DNA of 64,000 bases from NCBI RefSeq assembly GCF_963853765.1, contig NC_088855.1, forward strand, positions 40,052,001 through 40,116,000, in the 5' to 3' direction. Of the stretch, positions 39,124-48,309 are shown in pieces. The notes under the pieces are model-generated. The model had not been told where the DNA came from and did not search any database. It was given only the letters and a program-made list of their open reading frames with translations. The DNA is from Magallana gigas. Lineage: Eukaryota. The first letter of the stretch is position 1, and each line of letters begins with the position of its first letter. The position numbers and the translations under genes are program-made.

Positions 39124-40091
39124 CGGAACACTCCGGCGGCTGATACATTTTTATCCTTTTGAATAATTGATGACCTCTTGGACATAAAATATGAGACCAA
39201 AATAAAAGATTGACTTGGATGCTGTAAATTTTCATTGAGAATCTGAAGGAGAATCCAAATGGTAAGCTCAATCATTGATTCAGATTTGGAAGCCTCAAAT
39301 GTTGATCAGTTCTCAGCGACATGACGATGCCAATATTGTTACTGAATAAATCGGCTGTGGCAAAGCTGTAAATGTAAGTAACTTTACAGTATGCCTTCAA
39401 ATAGCTTGATGGCTCCAGCGTTATAGTAATAGACTGACGATCGTAAAACCTTAACTCCAAGCAAATAAACTTCTTCAAGATATTTTATCGTTTTAATTAA
39501 ATAAATGCAAAAGCCTATGAAAATTGCAGATACATGTACAGTTCTGAAAGACAGTTCTGTCATATCTTGACATAAAACACGATCTGATGAAAAACACGCA
39601 AATGAAATGTCAAAATGGACCCTTTTGCAGTTTGCTTGCATCGTTCATTAGGGTTACCAAAATGTGTTCCGTTTTGATTATCTAAAATAAAAATCCACAA
39701 GAACTTCTGGTGGCTCGGGATGGTATTCTAGTTGTATTGTATGCCCGCTCTTGCTTTCAAAGGATCCAAATGGACTGTTACGCAGTTTGTTTTCTTTGCA
39801 CATTTGCCTTATTTTTAATATGTTCCGTTTTCTTGATCTAGACGAAAGTGTCAACCTCAAGTTTTCTCATTACATTTCAAAATGTTGAGAGTGTTTGACA
39901 TGTTTTTCTTGTTTTTGTTCAAGTATAACGACACAAGGCAACTGTCTGGAAGCATAAACATTATGATGGAAATACAGTCAATCATCGATCCAGATTATTG
40001 GTGAAACAATATCAGGTTATAGAATACATTTCTTGATCATTTGAAGTATTGGTTTTTCACCTGTTTTGATCCCGTTTCCAGGTGAGTATCA

Positions 40092-40163
40092 GCCGGAATA
40101 GCTCAGTTGGGAGAGCGTTAGACTGAAGATCTAAAGGCCCCCGGTTAATCCCGGGTTCCGGCA
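40092..40163 (+). pseudogene. tRNA-Phe copy 9 with C56 deleted (B-box lesion)
   Basis: T-loop reads CCGGTTAATCCC. Confidence 0.85.
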
Positions 40164-41138
40164 CGGAACACTCCGGCGGCTGATACATTTTTATCCTTTT
40201 GAATAATAGATGACCTCTTGGACTAAAAATTTGAGACCAAAATAAAAGATTGACATGGATACTGTAAATTATCATTGAGAATCTGAAGGAGAATCCAGAT
40301 GGTAAGCTCAACCATCGATTCAGATTTGGAAAGTTCAAATGTAGATCAGTTCTCAGCGTCATGACGATGCCAATATTGTTACTGAATAAATCGGCTGTGG
40401 ACAAGCTGTAATTGTAAGTAACTTTACAGTATGCCTTCAAATAGCTTGATGGCTCCAGCGTTGACTGAAATAGTAATAAACTGACGATCGTAAAACCTTA
40501 ACTCCAAGCAAATAAACTTCTTCAAGATATTTTATCGTTTTAATTAAATAAATTCAAAAGCCTATGAAAATTGCAGATACATGTACAGTTCTGAAAGACA
40601 GTTCTGTCATATCTTGACATAAAACACGATCTGATGAAAAACACGCAAATGAAATGTCAAAATGGACCCTTTTTCAGTTTGCTTGCATCGTTCATTAGGG
40701 TTACCAAAATGTGTTCCGTTTTGATTATCTAAAATAAAAATCCACAAGAACTTCTGGTGGCTCGGGATGGCATTCTAGATGTATTGTATGCCCGCTCTTG
40801 CTTTCAAAGGATCCAAATGGACTGTTACGCAGTTTGTTTTCTTTGCACATTTGCCTTATTTTTAATATGTTCCGTTTTCTTGATCTAGACGAAAGTGTCA
40901 ACCTCAAGTTTTCTCATTACATTTCAAAATGTTGAGAGTGTTTGACATGTTTTTCTTGTTTTTGTTCAAGTATAACGACACAAGGCAACTGTCTGGAAGC
41001 ATAAACATTATGATGGAAATACAGTCAATCATCGATCCAGATTATTGGTGAAACAATATCAGGTTATAGAATACATTTCTTGATCATTTGAAGTATTGGT
41101 TTTTCACCTGTTTTGATCCCGTTTCCAGGTGAGTATCA

Positions 41139-41211
41139 GCCGGAATAGCTCAGTTGGGAGAGCGTTAGACTGAAGATCTAAAGGCCCCCGGTTAAATCCC
41201 GGGTTCCGGCA
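41139..41211 (+). pseudogene. tRNA-Phe copy 10 with C56A (B-box lesion)
   Basis: T-loop reads CCGGTTAAATCCC. Confidence 0.8.
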
Positions 41212-42187
41212 CGGAACACTCCGGCGGCTGATACATTTTTATCCTTTTGAATAATAGATGACCTCTTGGACTAAAAATTTGAGACCAAAATAAAAGATTG
41301 ACATGGATGGTGTAAATTTTCATTGAGAATCTGAAGGAGAATCCAGATGGTAAGCTCAACCATGGATTCAGATTTGGAAGCTTCAAATGTAGATCAGTTC
41401 TCAGCGACATGACGATGCCAATATTGTTACTGAATAAATCGGCTGTGGACAAGCTGTAATTGTACGTAACTTTACAGTATGCCTTCAAATAGCTTGATGG
41501 CTCCAGCGTTGACTGAAATAGTAATAGACTGACGATCGTAAAACCTTAACTCCAAGCAAATAAACTTCTTCAAGATATTTTATCGTTTTAATTAAATAAA
41601 TGCAAAAGCCTATGAAAATTGCAGATACATGTACAGTTCTGAAAGACAGTTCTGTCATATCTTGACATAAAACACGATCTGATGAAAAACACGCAAATGA
41701 AATGTCAAAATGGACCCTTATTCAGTTTGCTTGCATCGTTCATTAGGGTTACCAAAATGTGTTCCGTTTTGATTATCTAAAATAAAAATCCACAAGAACT
41801 TCTGGTGGCTTGGGATGGCATTCTAGATGTATTGTATGCCCGTTCTTGCTTTCAAGAGATCAAAATGGACTGTTACGCAGTTTGCTTTCTTTGCACATTT
41901 GCCTTATCTTTAATATGTTCCGTTTTCTTGATCTAGACGAAAGTGTCAACCTCAAGTTTTCTCATTACATTTCAAAATGTTGAGAGTGTTTGACACGTTT
42001 TTCTTGTTTTTTGCTCAAGTATAACGACACAAGGCAACTGTCTGGAAACATAAACACAATGATAGAAATACAGTCAATCATTGATCCAAATTATTGGGGA
42101 AACAATATCAGGTTATAGAATACATTTCTTGATCATTTGAAGTATTGGTTTTTTACCTCTTTTGATCCCATTTCCAGGTGAATATCA

Positions 42188-42245
42188 GCTGGAATAGCTC
42201 AGTTGGGAGATCGTTAGACTTAAGATCTAAAGGCCCCCGGTTCAA
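42188..42245 (+). pseudogene. tRNA-Phe copy 11, 5' part (nt 1-58), split by a 4.4-kb insertion
   Basis: GCTGGAATAGCTCAGTTGGGAGATCGTTAGACTTAAGATCTAAAGGCCCCCGGTTCAA followed by unrelated sequence; extra substitutions C3T, G24T and G34T. Confidence 0.93.
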
Positions 42246-42491
42246 AAGGTGGGGGCAGTTTCAGTTTCTGAATCTTCCAGAAATCAACAGTGCATCAGTC
42301 TTTAATTGATTATTATTTAAAGAATTTGCCACAAATCAATGCATAATTTTGACACATTAAACTTACATATAAGTATTTATAATTATTATTTGTTATTGCG
42401 ACATGTTATCACTTAAATTATCTAAAAAATTATACATTTTTGATATTAAATATAAATGTTTAAATGAATTATATCACTTTTGTCACTATTA

Positions 42492-42562
42492 TATACCCAC
42501 TAGGGTTCGAACCCGGATCTTTTGTCAAAAAGACAAGTATGCTTCTATTGCACCATGGGAAT
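42492..42562 (-). ncRNA. tRNA-Gln-like cloverleaf module inside the transposon
   Basis: ATTCCCA TG GTGC AATAGAA GCAT A CTTGT CTTTTTG ACAAA AGAT CCGGG TTCGAAC CCTAG TGGGTAT; A box TGGTGCAATAG, B box GGTTCGAACC; four stems with few mismatches. Confidence 0.6.
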
Positions 42563-42792
42563 TTTAAGTGACAGAAAGCAAAGTCCTAATTAGGCATTAT
42601 TAAAGATACCAAAAAACTTTCCCTCTGCTTTATGAGACATACAGTATTCTTACTATATGTCTCCAAGGGCTTCGACCTTCTAGTTAAGCAGTTAGCTAAA
42701 CTAGGCAGCATTAAAAGGTTTTTTTACAATGTTTTTTGGGGGGTTTTTTTTTGGGGGGGGGGGTCTTCAAATTTTGGTTTCGGTGAAGACTC

Positions 42793-45700
42793 TCACTTGT
42801 CATCTGAAGAGAGATCTTCTTTTGCAGTCTTCTCAACAGGCATGCAGGTCTTGTCTGCCTTCGCTTTCCTTTTGCCATATCCTTTTTCTCTCAACTCCTC
42901 TTCCAAGCATCATATGATATGGCAGTCTTTGAGGGACAGTAAATAATTCCAAACTACTGCTGATGACCTCCTCCTGACTTGTCCTCTCCACATTTACTAT
43001 AAGAAGTGACAAAGGCCTTTCGAACATAGGGTCTTGAAGTTGAAGTTCCCTTCCTCCACTGACTGCTGTTTCTTCTTCTGGTAGTGCTTGGTAGAGTATG
43101 GTATTAAGGGAACCTGAGATGGCACTGGGACTATTTTCACTGGAGGAATGTTGTTGATTGGCACGGGTTGGACAAACACTGGTTGCTCTGGAAAAATCCT
43201 CCGTCTTCCTTTGGTGCCTTGTCCAACAGTGGATAGATTCACTGTGAATCCATGGGGGTCTGGTGTTCCAGTCTCTAAGGCCTTTGGTTTTAGCATTGGA
43301 AGGGGTAGTGACTGGGCCGCAACAGACGTTAATAAATTCCTTAATAAATCCCTTACAAGTTTGGTTGATTGATATCGCTAATTTTCACACAGGGTCCTAA
43401 TAAATCCCTTACAAGTCTGGTTGATTGATGTCGCTAATTTTCACACATGAGCTGGGCCTGGGGGGATCGTACCACAGGTGGTCTATTTTCCTGTCATCCA
43501 GCTCAGGCTTACCCTTGGCATTGAAAGAGAACAGAGCCTTAGATATCCAAGGAATGTCCTCTGGAGGCAGACATGATTTCCAGCTATCTATGATAGGATA
43601 CTCTCTAAAAAAGGATAAATAATGCAAATGAAAAAAGGCAACTCACCCAGTCACAGGCAATATCATCTTAAAAATTTCATTAATTCTCATTCTAGTTTAA
43701 AAAATTACCATATATAACTGGTTGAAGGTTCAGAGTCTGCGTTTGTGGTGTAGCTGTCACTGATGAAGTCGATGACGAAGCTGATGGTAGCCTTGTTGAC
43801 GTAGCCGGTGGTGGCAGTGTCACTGAGGTAGCGGATGGTGGCAGAGTAACTGACGAAGCTGGTAGTGGCAGTGTCACTGACAGAGTTGGAGTTGGAGGTA
43901 ACACTGATGGAGTCGGAGTCGGAGAGAGGCGACACTGACGGACTCACTGGTGGAGGTGACACTGACATACTCACTGGTGGAGGCGACAAGGACGGAGTCA
44001 CTGGTGGAAGCAACACTGACAGACTCGCTGGTGGAGGCGACATTGACGGAGTCACTGGTGGAAGCAACTCTGAAGGAGTCACTGGTTGGGGTGACATTGA
44101 CGAAGTCTCTAGAAGAGGCGACACTGACGGAGGCAACATTGACGGACTCACTGACGGAGGCAACACTGACGGAGTCACTGTAGGAGATTACGATGATAAT
44201 CCAGAACTCACTGAGATCTATGAAGCTTCCACAACTACCACTGCAACAGGATGCAAAATCAAAGTAATTGTTTGAAGATCATACTATATGGTATTAAATA
44301 AAAGAGCTTTATTTTCAGTTGTGTCGTGTACTTACCATTTTTTGTTGGTTTACTTGGCTTGGCTGATCTTTGTCGACTCGGAGCCAAGGTGTCCTTTGCC
44401 GTCAGAAGATGGGGGCGGGTCTTCTGAGGGCTTTTGACATTGCGAAGATCTGAAAGGAAAACAAGTAGTGTAAATAAATGAGCTTATCTAAAACAATATA
44501 TGCGATCGAAGAGAAATATCAGTTTCGCTTACTGACCTTTCTGTCGAGGAGGCACTGTTGAAAGAGGCTTGGTCTAGCTTGGCGATCTTGTCGGTGCAGA
44601 GGATTCTACAATGCATTACATTGCAATCAATCACAAGTTTTATTTTCTGTTAATCAACTATACCAAATTTAATTCACCGAAAAAAGTCAAAAATGATATT
44701 TTTATACTCCACGCCACACCTCTGACTAATTACACTTACCATAATTTGCTGAAGTCTATATAGAGCTAATACGGAAGTTTAACACAATATATATAATTTA
44801 CTATTTATATGAAACTAAAAGAGGACACAATATCAGTTACTTTTTAATTTATATATAGATATTGATATGAAATTATGCTTTATGAAAAATCAATTGATTC
44901 ATTTAAATTTAAAAGCTTTGTTTTTATATACTTTAAACAAATCTTACAGTGTTTATAGATAGACTTATTTGACGAATAAAACTGAAGAATTGAATAAAAA
45001 TTAAAAAATTACCTTTCAACAGATTGCTTTCTATTTTTTCTACTTCTCCTTATAACGCAATATCTGAAAAATCATCCACAGACATCTTCCTTGGACTCAG
45101 TATGTTTGGTTTAACAACCGGCCGAGATCTGGCAGCTTCCTCATGCTGTACTTTTCTTGCCTCCGCAGCAGGAAGATGTGAAAATAAGAACTCTGGTGTT
45201 AAAGGAGGCCTTTTCTTTTCCTCTTCTTTCACTTCGCTGCTGCTTTTTCAATTTGACAACTTCTCGACCCAGGATATTAAATCAATTTTAGACATAGTAA
45301 CCTATTAATTATCAAGTAACATCAAGTTTAATGAATTTTTAATTTTATGATTCAAATATTAAGAAGAATGAAAACTTCTATATTTATCGTTTGTTATTAG
45401 TATATTTACGACATGATTATATATATGTTACCGACGTTTTGTTTAATTTATCACAAATGAATATATAAGGCATTACTTACCTTCAGGGAAAGAGAGTAGG
45501 TAATCCTTAAACGCATGCTTGTTCTCTCTCTCCTCATTGCATCCCTAAGCCAGCCCGCATAACTGAGGCAGTTTTCCACCATCCATAAAAATGTCTGACC
45601 CTGATATTTACCAAATTAGGTTGGGATTTGTCCATGAAGAATTTGGAAATTCTTCGGATCACCATTTTTGGATTTTACAGCCCTAACTGCTTGGCTTTGA

Positions 45701-45815
45701 CTTGTGACGGCTGCTCACATAATCCCGGCATAGACTTGACTAGGCCTTTCTCTGCCTCTTCCCTCCCGTACAACAGGAGGTCTCCATTTCTTGTTCGCCG
45801 GAAATGAGACAACAT
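42793..45815 (-). pseudogene. Multi-exon transposase-like pseudogene (DUF6729/Dada-type N- and C-terminal regions; catalytic core missing)
   Basis: GT-AG exons at ~45481-45816 (MLSHFRRTRNG...GDPKNFQILHGQIP*FGKYQGQTFLWMVENCLSYAGWL), ~45013-45270, ~44538-44607, ~44336-44450, ~43709-44240 (Pro/Ser/Thr repeats) and 43604 downward (WKSCLPPEDIPWISKALF...GKPEL...LWYDPPRP, then a junction, then C-terminal KCGEDK...GH...FG..YCP...YDAWK); stops and frameshifts present. Confidence 0.7.
43342..43447. repeat. Two 50-bp direct repeats at the internal deletion junction of the transposase
   Basis: 43342-43391 and 43398-43447, 2 mismatches, 6-bp spacer GGGTCC. Confidence 0.9.
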
Positions 45816-46686
45816 GCTGTAGATTTGGTGGATGATCAAACAAAATTGGATGAAAGTTAAGGCTATCAAAAGTCTTGCTGCATGAATGTGAATCTCAATA
45901 ATGTTGTTCTTAGAATATTTACATTGTGCCTCACTCTTAATTAATATAATAAAGATAATTTTGATACTCATATCACCTGTTACAAAGGTGTGCAAAACAG
46001 TTGGATATTTACATGAATTAATTACAGATGCAAGATGTAAATTCAAAATATTTCCAAAGCACGTGGTACTGATTATAAACACGGTCTTATCTACCTATGT
46101 TCGTCTCTTATTATACACCACGGAGAGTTGAAAAGTCATAAATTAAAGTTGCTGAAAAAGGTGTATGAGGATGAGGGGGTCAGGTCATGTTGTTGATAAA
46201 TACCGGCTAAAACCCATTAAGATAAGCGTGAAAACCTAATAAGATAATAACATTAAGTTACAAGCATTCATTCATATATGCCAATAATTAATTATGCGCA
46301 GTTAATTGCTAGAAAAAGCGATTGAACTTAAATAGGTCATGTCGTACATCAAAGCAGAGAAAAGGGGGGGGGTGTAATAAAATGGCTACTTACATGTTTT
46401 TGTTCCTTTGTATGTCCAAACAATCACTTGCACGGAAACAAATCCACTAAAAGCTATACAATCTAGGCGATCACTAACTTAAATATCACTATTTTCATAC
46501 ACGATTTTCACAAAACCACTATATTGACAACCGGTAAATATCACATCCAATATGGCGGAATAATCAGGGGCAGATAACTCCAATATTTACTCTCCTCGGC
46601 AGCAGCATCTCATTGGTCAATTTATGATTGATTTGTGGTAGATTTGCCATGGAACTGAGGTCACTGATTGGCTGGCTGGAGTGCAA

Positions 46687-46701
46687 TCCCGGGTTCCGGC
46701 A
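46687..46701 (+). pseudogene. tRNA-Phe copy 11, 3' part (nt 59-73)
   Basis: TCCCGGGTTCCGGCA followed by the standard trailer CGGAACACTCCGGCGGCTGATACATTTTT. Confidence 0.93.
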
Positions 46702-47675
46702 CGGAACACTCCGGCGGCTGATACATTTTTATCCTTTTGAATAATTGATGACCTCTGGGACATAAAATTTAAGCTCAATATAAAAGATTGACATGGATGC
46801 TGTAAATTGTCATTGATAATCTGAAGGAGAATCCAGATGGTGAACTCAACCATGGATTCAGATTTGGAAGCTTCAAATGTTGATCAGTTTTCGGCAACAT
46901 GACGATGCCAATATTGTTACTGAATAAATTGGCTCTGGCAAAGCTGTTATTGAACGAACATTTACGGTATCCCTTCACATAGCTTGATGGCTCCAGCGTT
47001 GAACGAATTGATGATAGACTGACGATCGTAAAACCTTAACTCCCAACAAGAAAACTTCTTAAAAGACATTTAAACTTTATAATTAAATAATTGCACAAGC
47101 CTATGAAAATTGCAGATACATGTACTGTTCTGAAAGATAGTTCTGTCAAATCTCGCCATAAAACACGATCTGATGATGAACACGCAAATAAAATGTCAAA
47201 CTGGACCCTCTTGCAGTTTGCTTGCATCGTTCATTAGGGTTACCAAAATGTTCCGTTTTGATTATCTAAAATAAAAATCCACAAGAACTACTAGTGGCTT
47301 GGGATGGCATTCTAGATGTATGCCTGTTCATGCTTTCAAGGGATCAAAATGGATTGTTACGCAGTTTGCTCTCTTTGCACAATCGCCTTATCCTTAATGT
47401 GTTCCGTTTTCTTGATCTAGACGAAAGTGTCAATCTCAAGTCTTCTCATTACATTTCAAAATGTTGAGAGTGTTTGGCGTGTTTTTCTTGTTTTTGATCA
47501 TGTATAACGACACACGGCAACTGTCTGGAAGCATAAACATTATGATGGAAATACAGTCATTCATCGATCCAGATTATTGGGGAAACAATATCAGGTTTAC
47601 TTATAGAATACATTTCTTGATCATTTGAATTATTGGTGTTTCACCTGTTTTGATCCCGTTTCCAGGTGAGTATCA

Positions 47676-47737
47676 ACCGGAATAGCTCAGTTGGGAGAGC
47701 GTTAGACATAAGATCTGAGCAATCCCGGGTTTCGGCA
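47676..47737 (+). pseudogene. tRNA-Phe copy 12, degenerate, variable loop and T-stem deleted
   Basis: ACCGGAATAGCTCAG...GACATAAGATCT GAG CAATCCCGGGTTTCGGCA; AAAGGCCCCCGGTT is missing. Confidence 0.9.
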
Positions 47738-48309
47738 CCGAACACTCCGGCGGCTGATATATCTTTCTTTGTTTACTCATAATAATAGATTGATATGTAT
47801 ACTGTGAATTGTTAGTTAGAATCTGAAGGAGATTTCAGATTATGTACATATCTTTTTTCATTCTTTTCTAACTTCAGCACTCAACAATTTTTTTCAGTGG
47901 TTGTTTAAATTCGAAGCTACAATGCCAATCAACCAACAATTATGTTATAGGGTTTCAAATATCTTAATTTAGTGTATATGTTTTTCCATCGAGAGGCATC
48001 CATTCAGATTCAAATCACGGCGCTGTTTTGATGTTTTTTCCTCTAATAAGACCATTGTCTGAGATACAATGTTAGGTCAGTCATTGACTTCGTCAGATTT
48101 ACAGTAAAAGATGATATTTTTTAAAGAGTCAAAGAGTTAAGGGTCAATACGTTCTGGAGATAAAAGAAACAAACAATAGAAGTCAATTTGGAGAAATTTG
48201 TTTATAATGCACAATTGACCTATATAGATTTGAATTCAATTTCCAAAGGATACAATTTCATAGTATATATGACTATTTTGCTTAGAAACAATATGAAGTG
48301 ATTTAATTG

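Follow-up and report, generated by a model that had tools for sequence, protein, structure and literature searches.

A tRNA-Phe gene split by a transposon

The stretch of DNA analysed here (the window) comprises 64,000 nt of the Magallana gigas assembly GCF_963853765.1 (contig NC_088855.1, positions 40,052,001 to 40,116,000), and contains tRNA-Phe(GAA) genes arranged in tandem in units of ~1040 bp; ARAGORN and Rfam recognised nine intact genes in this array, at 27186–41212. One further array copy is interrupted by an insert of 4435 bp (42246–46680), which we identify with high confidence as a dead deletion derivative of the DNA transposon family Dada-1_CGi. A BLAST comparison of a single unit with the window placed unit nt 1–58 at 42188–42245 and unit nt 53–1040 at 46681–47675, with the insert located between tRNA nt 58 and 59, having GGTTCAA on its left and TCCCGGG on its right. 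The six nucleotides at unit positions 53–58 are present on both sides as a target-site duplication (TSD) with one mismatch, GTTCAA on the left and GTGCAA on the right. Intact tRNA-Phe reads CCCCCGGTTCAATCCCGGG across this site, and the break therefore falls in the T-loop, within the B box. The extreme ends of the insert carry no inverted repeat, only an imperfect 31-bp sub-terminal one being present. The split after nt 58, the TSD with its mismatch and the ends without terminal inverted repeats (TIRs) had been reported in a preliminary description of this DNA, and all three are borne out by our analysis.

The left junction is crossed by Logan contigs of four public oyster runs (e.g. 42147–42726 and 42124–42429), and the right junction by Logan contigs of the same four runs (46345–46713), while the right junction is also present in L083, a contig of a fifth run. 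The runs holding the structure are labelled oyster or oyster metagenome, and the four bridging both junctions come from at least three studies. Since independent contigs bridge both junctions, the split is real and not an artefact of assembly.

Identity of the inserted element

Dada-1_CGi was listed for Crassostrea gigas without a target and with a single representative, AFTI01018005 30202-24790 (Kojima & Jurka 2013, PLoS One 8:e68260, PMC3706591), and the full-length Dada protein alignment of the same study is available as its Dataset S1. The transposase remnants of the insert lie on the minus strand, in the orientation contrary to that of the tRNA, and are matched piece by piece by the Dada-1_CGi row of Dataset S1. 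The matching pieces are a QCQKPSEDPPPSSDGKGHLGSESTKISQA stretch (44353–44442), the Ser/Thr-rich repeats, the exon with YPII.SWKSCLPPEDIPW... (alike through YPII.SWKSCLPPEDIPWISKALFSFNAKGKPELDDRKID..WYDPP), and the C-terminal exon (42793–43328), with RIFPEQPVF..., a CCHC finger and ...KGYGKRKAKADKTCMPVEKTAKEDLSS.DK, where the likeness extends over RIFPEQPVF...CGKCGE...GHQQYFGNIYCP...KGYGKRKAKADKTCMPVEKTAKEDLSS.DK. At the DNA level, the window element is 88.6–93.6% identical to the public contigs L076, L077 and L081 over 42214–43328, 43447–43853 and 44141–46677, with one 3515-bp gap. Using the usual 80% rule as family threshold, with nucleotide identity taken over the shared length, the element is thus at least 80% identical to all three contigs, which served as stand-ins for the Repbase nucleotide entry.

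Contig L077 (5120 bp) was found via the C-terminal exon, and wherever its open reading frames (ORFs) were compared by eye with the published protein of Dada-1_CGi, the two agree. The ORFs carry the CCCC finger (KCPICTK...HCSSCKK), the D, D, DxxH and E residues (MDSTKK, YVDSHCC, LDIWHF and STSLESFH) and the CCHC finger of a Dada transposase. The N-terminal ORFs of L077 match Pfam DUF6729 with an E-value of 2e-57, while the ORF with the DDE core has no Pfam match, and DUF6729 therefore represents the zinc-finger region preceding the catalytic core of Dada transposases. The window piece 43412–43642 matches DUF6729 (PF20499) as well, at profile positions 1–44 of 229 only (E 4.7e-7), and the remaining ORF pieces of the window element gave no match in Pfam. 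There are 67 representative database proteins matching the 43447–43853 piece, including Dada-like proteins of 1046–1207 aa, and the motifs FGKY.GQTF.W..EN and LP.ED..WI...LWY.PP are found in Dataset S1. The N-terminal motif FGKYQGQTFLWMVEN is shared with Dada-U6_CGi and Dada-U6_SS in that dataset, and with an intact ORF of L081.

The preliminary description had placed the insert in the Dada superfamily, on the basis of motifs of the DUF6729-associated type, and both the published alignment and the matches of the window and of L077 agree with this placement. It had also suggested that the family might be undescribed, which does not hold, since judged by sequence the window element is a copy of Dada-1_CGi, known since 2013, and no new family. 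The stretch 42383–43328, which matched two loci on contig C1, was at one stage considered to be captured filler; this was ruled out, as it consists of the last exon and the 3′ region common to the truncated copies L002 and L003 at these loci.

Internal deletion and decay of the window copy

The stretch missing from the window copy is 3515 bp long (L077 465–3979), begins immediately past LWYDPP and extends to midway through the last exon, and includes the CCCC finger and the entire DDE/DxxH core. In agreement with this, the long Dada-like proteins match the window at the two N-terminal exons only, with nothing found past their first ~260 residues. Both the DDE transposase with DxxH after the second D and the N-terminal CCCC finger are absent from the window copy and present in L077, and we therefore regard the window element as a non-autonomous derivative which is still a member of Dada, rather than as a non-member. 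Compared to Dada-1_CGi, it has thus lost 3.5 kb with finger and core, its CCHC finger is broken, filler occupies the breakpoint of the deletion, and its right end is shortened (Table 1).

What remains of the coding sequence is damaged. The exon at 43447–43853 has lost 1 nt just before the breakpoint, which shifts its frame, and the original transposase stop codon is located at 42793–42795. The CCHC finger (Cx2Cx9Hx8C) at 42936–43001 reads Y..C, nine residues, H, a stop and C, with Tyr replacing the first Cys and the stop following HQQ; it is whole in L002 and L077, and a pattern search for an intact CCHC finger across the window gave a spurious match only. The intron-containing transposase-like gene of the preliminary description thus stands as far as its motifs are concerned, which are found on the minus strand, but there is no intact gene, only fragments of its two ends with 3.5 kb lost in between. 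Likewise, the C-terminal C..C...H...C motif that it pointed out is recognisable but damaged.

The filler is built of roughly two units of a 56-bp repeat dispersed in the genome (TAATAAATCCCTTACAAG...TTTTCACACA, window 43342–43447), which is found at many genomic sites with 96–100% identity, singly or in short arrays (L004-L030), a 55-bp unit of it being 100% identical at many of them. On contig C6, near 35.35–35.37 Mb, the 56-bp unit recurs at a regular spacing of 3636 bp.

Table 1. Features of the split tRNA-Phe gene and of the Dada-1_CGi copy inserted in it (positions in the window)
Feature	Position	Strand	Evidence or remark
Split tRNA-Phe(GAA), 5′ part (nt 1–58)	42188–42245	+	Unit BLAST and pattern search; three mismatches compared with intact copies
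Left TSD, GTTCAA	42240–42245	+	Last 6 nt of the tRNA-Phe 5′ part
Dada-1_CGi copy, internally deleted and decayed, 4435 bp	42246–46680	-	DNA identity to L076, L077 and L081 except at 43329–43446
Left terminus, starting AAGGTGGGGGC	42246–42285	+	Sub-terminal motif mutated (TTCTTCAGTCT in intact copies); compared with L077 and L076
Imperfect 31-bp sub-terminal inverted repeat, left arm	42323–42353		Partner at 46616–46645; local alignment of left end with reverse-complemented right end
tRNA-Lys(UUU)-like sequence in 3′ untranslated part	42492–42562	-	ARAGORN; Rfam 38.7 bits
Last transposase exon, remnant, frameshifted	42793–43328	-	Matches Dada-1_CGi C-terminus (Dataset S1); 88–89% identical to L077 3980–5119
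Filler at deletion breakpoint, ~118 bp	43329–43446		About two units of a 56-bp dispersed repeat; replaces 3515 bp of the intact element (L077 465–3979)
Exon remnant with LPPEDIPWISKALF...LWYDPP (43460–43570)	43447–43853	-	93.6% identical to L077 56–464
Ser/Thr/Pro-rich region with 27-nt tandem repeats, N-terminal coding	43708–44187	-	Same region in Dada-1_CGi and P0002
Exon remnant with Dada N-terminus motif FGKYQGQTFLWMVEN (45571–45615)	45454–45615	-	tblastn matches by long Dada-like proteins
Right terminus, ending GATTGGCTGGCTGGA	46616–46680	+	22 bp with sub-terminal motif AGACTGAAGAA absent compared with intact copies; junction table
Right TSD GTGCAA (46681–46686), then tRNA-Phe 3′ part (TCCCGGGTTCCGGCA)	46681–46701	+	Array unit continues to 47675

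Neither an intact transposase gene nor a helper of the same family was found. In the assembly, the N-terminal exons are not present a second time and there is no catalytic core of the Dada-1_CGi family, the best match to the core being 57–61% identical and belonging to other Dada families; contig C1 has two partial copies of the 3′ part (L002 and L003), both truncated at each end. The full-length copy with D..D..DxxH..E residues which the preliminary description proposed to look for does exist, as public contig L077, whereas the assembly has none. From this we infer that the window copy is an immobile fossil, stuck for good. The shortened right end and the right junction are also present in L083, from another run, and since L083 is only 95.6% identical to the window copy, this suggests that the insertion is old and inherited. 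After insertion, the element lost the 3.5 kb with CCCC finger and DDE/DxxH core, gained ~118 bp of unrelated repeat DNA where the deletion took place, became shorter by 22 bp at its right end, and accumulated frameshifts and stops.

The insertion site in other copies of the family

The chance of a random landing in tRNA-Phe is about 2e-6 (~17 genes of 73 bp in 564 Mb). Because the window copy is the only split tRNA-Phe gene, specificity cannot be proven from the assembly alone, and other copies of the family were compared at their termini; contig P0001 is too short to reach any terminus. The 3′ terminus of L077 adjoins tRNA-Phe nt 24–52 at exactly the same nucleotide as in the window, with the hexamer GCGCAA rather than GTTCAA, and the right hexamer of the window copy, GTGCAA, is intermediate between the two. 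Both elements thus share a fixed site (nt 58/59) in a multicopy small-RNA gene. In contigs of five runs (L076, L081, L084, L085 and L087) the right end of the element is followed by GTTCAA and then by a left end. TSDs of 6 bp, of the type often seen as GCGCAA or replaced by it in Dada elements, are found in the window, in L077 and in these tandem junctions. L076 and L077 are 99% identical yet have different junctions, and the family has therefore been recently active in the animals behind those runs.

In the assembly, the window copy is the sole one with both ends, and a diverged solo right end was found elsewhere. This relic (L025) lies on the same chromosome (contig C3, 14.67 Mb), is followed by GCAATTCCCGGG, and is located 1.4 kb from one of only 14 exact copies of the tRNA-Phe T-arm in the 564-Mb genome. 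Its flanks are unrelated, and L025 has no homology to the left end, with an alignment score equal to the maximum obtained from shuffled sequence. Within L025 1501–1700 (C3:14.667 Mb), the right-end relic is succeeded by a perfect 18-nt palindrome (CTTAGACTGAAGAATGAA ... TTCATTCTTCAGTCTAAG) around GCAATTCCCGGGCACCGATATCG, which appears to represent two right-end tips facing each other across a fragment of the tRNA-Phe T-arm.

Intact copies have an 11-bp sub-terminal inverted repeat, which reads TTCTTCAGTCT on the left and AGACTGAAGAA on the right, in each case 13 nt from the end. In tRNA-Phe, AGACTGAAGAT is part of the anticodon arm and lies 13 nt upstream of GTTCAA, and intact copies therefore have sub-terminal repeats in common with their target at equal distance, as is characteristic for Dada. 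In the window copy the left sub-terminal motif is mutated and the right one deleted, with only the imperfect 31-bp repeat remaining.

A model of motif-guided integration and its alternatives

We propose that the Dada-1_CGi transposase would bind the 11-bp motif (AGACTGAAGAA) present as inverted repeat 13 nt inside each end, and would recognise it again in the tRNA-Phe anticodon arm, AGACTGAAGA being the motif common to target and ends, with integration then taking place 13 nt downstream, at GTTCAA. The canonical Dada hexamer GCGCAA may sometimes be left in place of the target hexamer. As the right end together with the TSD copies the target, a resident copy could receive a new one, which would lead to head-to-tail tandems. 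Splitting of the B box should silence the tRNA copy that is struck, probably at low cost, as the gene is multicopy, and the multicopy tRNA-Phe genes would thus provide a low-cost landing site. Directly observed are the insertion site, its TSD, the element termini, the geometry of the motifs and the core deletion.

We consider it probable, although well short of certain, that Dada-1_CGi is truly specific for the tRNA-Phe T-loop/B box (in effect a 'Dada-tF'), with motif-guided targeting and a right end that seeds tandems. Several points weigh against this. The case for specificity depends on a small number of junctions, several coming from unplaced short public contigs, no other tRNA-Phe gene in the assembly is split, and the only copy with both ends in the assembly is the window copy, L002 and L003 being uninformative with regard to target. 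The tRNA-Phe 3′ part was not recovered next to the right end of any full-length copy, and the junction of right end, GTTCAA and left end could stem from a circular form instead of a tandem. Motif-guided targeting is drawn by analogy with Dada-U6 and Dada-U1, and not from experiment. As regards family identity, the match between L077 and the published protein was read by eye rather than computed. The preliminary description had seen the element as a sequence-specific integrator; this fits the family, of which other copies are found at the same tRNA-Phe nucleotide, but not the window copy, which integrates nothing today.

The alternative that survives best, although we consider it unlikely, is a single ancient chance insertion, from which the tRNA-Phe-flanked copies (window, L077 and the L025 relic) would all descend by duplication of units or segments. 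With few junctions known, tRNA arrays readily duplicating their units (cf. the 1.04-kb array described here), and the window junction being shared with the only 95.6% identical L083 and hence old and inherited, such a history would account for part of the data. However, it does not explain why the left hexamers differ (GTTCAA in the window, GCGCAA in L077), nor why L076 and L077 have different junctions while being 99% identical, with the window copy 6–11% diverged from both, and the flanks of the L025 relic are unrelated. Still less probable is a distinct, undescribed tRNA-Phe-specific family ('Dada-tF') which merely resembles Dada-1_CGi. The 6–11% divergence of the window copy from the canonical contigs and its grouping with L083 and L086 in a sub-lineage with a shortened right end could be taken in this way, but the DNA identity of 88.6–93.6%, which by the 80% rule places them in the same family, is accompanied by the same exon remnants, termini and internal tRNA-like sequence, and the canonical copy L077 is itself located in tRNA-Phe. 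Finally, although tandem arrays are prone to misassembly, an assembly artefact or chimeric join can be dismissed, as contigs of four public runs from at least three studies bridge both junctions and L083 of a further run has the same right junction.

Other features of the array, the element and related loci

The last array unit contains a tRNA-Phe pseudogene (47677–47766) with an internal deletion (…GATCTGAGCAATCCCGGGTTTCGGCA), which lacks the variable loop and the 5′ T-stem. It has GCAA before TCCCGGG, like Dada right junctions, and could represent either ordinary decay at the edge of the array or a transposon footprint. The second array unit is rearranged, with unit positions 844–935 and 548–802 out of order at 27776–28111, and without the 5′ half of the tRNA, the 3′ half being present alone at 28138; the array appears to have been rearranged internally here long ago.

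There is another insertion in the array, of 4714 bp (32403–37116), located in the spacer 77 bp downstream of the tRNA-Phe gene at 32253. This is a DIRS-like retrotransposon with two open ORFs, one of 894 aa with a zinc knuckle, a reverse transcriptase and a weak match to a Dam-like methyltransferase, and one of 326 aa encoding a tyrosine recombinase. Many copies with 94–99% identity are present at non-tRNA sites genome-wide, and the insert would seem to belong to a family that is young and dispersed, and shows no preference for tRNA genes.

The tRNA-Lys(UUU)-like sequence of the window element is conserved at full length in Dada-1_CGi (L077 4765–4835, L076 4752–4822 and L002 1610–1680), ~250–320 bp inside the 3′ terminus and in the orientation of the transposase. 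The B box is perfect and the D-arm poor, with Rfam tRNA scores of 38.7 bits in the window, 48.5 in L002 and 51.5 in both L076 and L077. The head of a high-copy short interspersed element (SINE) was considered and ruled out; the sequence may have been captured as a gene, may serve as an RNA polymerase III unit or may be left over from a former target.

Other Dada/DUF6729 families are represented elsewhere in the genome by about a dozen loci, with 43–61% protein identity to Dada-1_CGi and some with long open frames (C3:53.53 Mb, with two copies 10 kb apart, C3:27.42–27.45 Mb, C3:1.03 Mb, C9:30.22 Mb, C4:19.0–19.13 Mb and several on C1). In the 3-kb stretches analysed from other DUF6729 loci there was no tRNA or Rfam gene.

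Comparison with other Dada families

Few DNA transposons are target-specific, Dada being the chief example. Dada-1_CGi, the superfamily and its habits are all known from the literature, while the tRNA-Phe T-loop as a target looks new: as the preliminary description had supposed, no such Dada target or insertion site was found in the literature searched, with Repbase outside that search. The same search returned nothing on DUF6729, no 'Dada-tF' and nothing further on Dada in combination with bivalves. For Dada-1_CGi, published without a target or a consensus, both termini and the tRNA-Phe site (nt 53–58) are now defined. For annotation, it means that one of ~17 tRNA-Phe genes is split by a dead element, in an assembly which holds no catalytic core of the family.

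Traits published for Dada elements include a left terminus of AAGG followed by a G-run, TSDs of 6–7 bp, often of the GCGCAA type, replacement of the TSD, and sub-terminal repeats matching the target at equal distance (Kojima & Jurka 2013, PMC3706591). The left end found here, AAGGTGGGGGC, has the same start of AAGG and a G-run as Dada-tA_DR and Dada-tA_OL (AAGGAAGGGGCG and AAGGCGGGGGG), with Dada-U6 starting AGG... The Dada-U6 and Dada-U1 families of zebrafish, Daphnia, Capitella and oyster resemble Dada-1_CGi in their 6-bp TSDs of the GCGCAA/GCGAAA type, the absence of TIRs, a left end with AGG, and tandem copies with only the TSD in between, Dada-U1 tandems being set apart by the TSD alone (Kojima & Jurka 2013, PMC3706591). 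Dada-U6_DR also has its transposase in the orientation opposite to that of the gene targeted. The targets differ, with Dada-U6 and Dada-U1 inserting in U6 and U1 small nuclear RNA genes and having motifs of 9 bp or 7 bp, whereas here the target is tRNA-Phe, with a motif of 11 bp located 13 nt from the ends. This would be a third example of the rule of a motif at equal distance, strengthening the published idea that these transposases read one short motif shared by the element ends and the target; the 11-bp motif and the 6-bp site defined here make this idea testable.

Specific insertion within tRNA genes is shared with Dada-tA_DR, Dada-tA_OL, Dada-tL_DR and the fish tRNA Dada families (Kojima 2022, Biology 11:166), and in Dada-tA elements, which have the left end with AAGG and a G-run, GCGCAA replaces the target hexamer (Kojima & Jurka 2013), as at the L077 junction. 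However, the Dada sites published for tRNA genes cluster at the anticodon arm and at the A box (nt 8–13), whereas Dada-1_CGi is found at nt 53–58, in the T-loop/B box, which, if true, would add the B box as a third insertion region in tRNA genes beside anticodon arm and A box. The only published Dada found within tRNA-Phe-GAA genes is Dada-tY_CaAu of goldfish, with two cases; these are located at TAGCTC in the A box and represent a side target of a tRNA-Tyr family in a vertebrate, at a site different from that of Dada-1_CGi.

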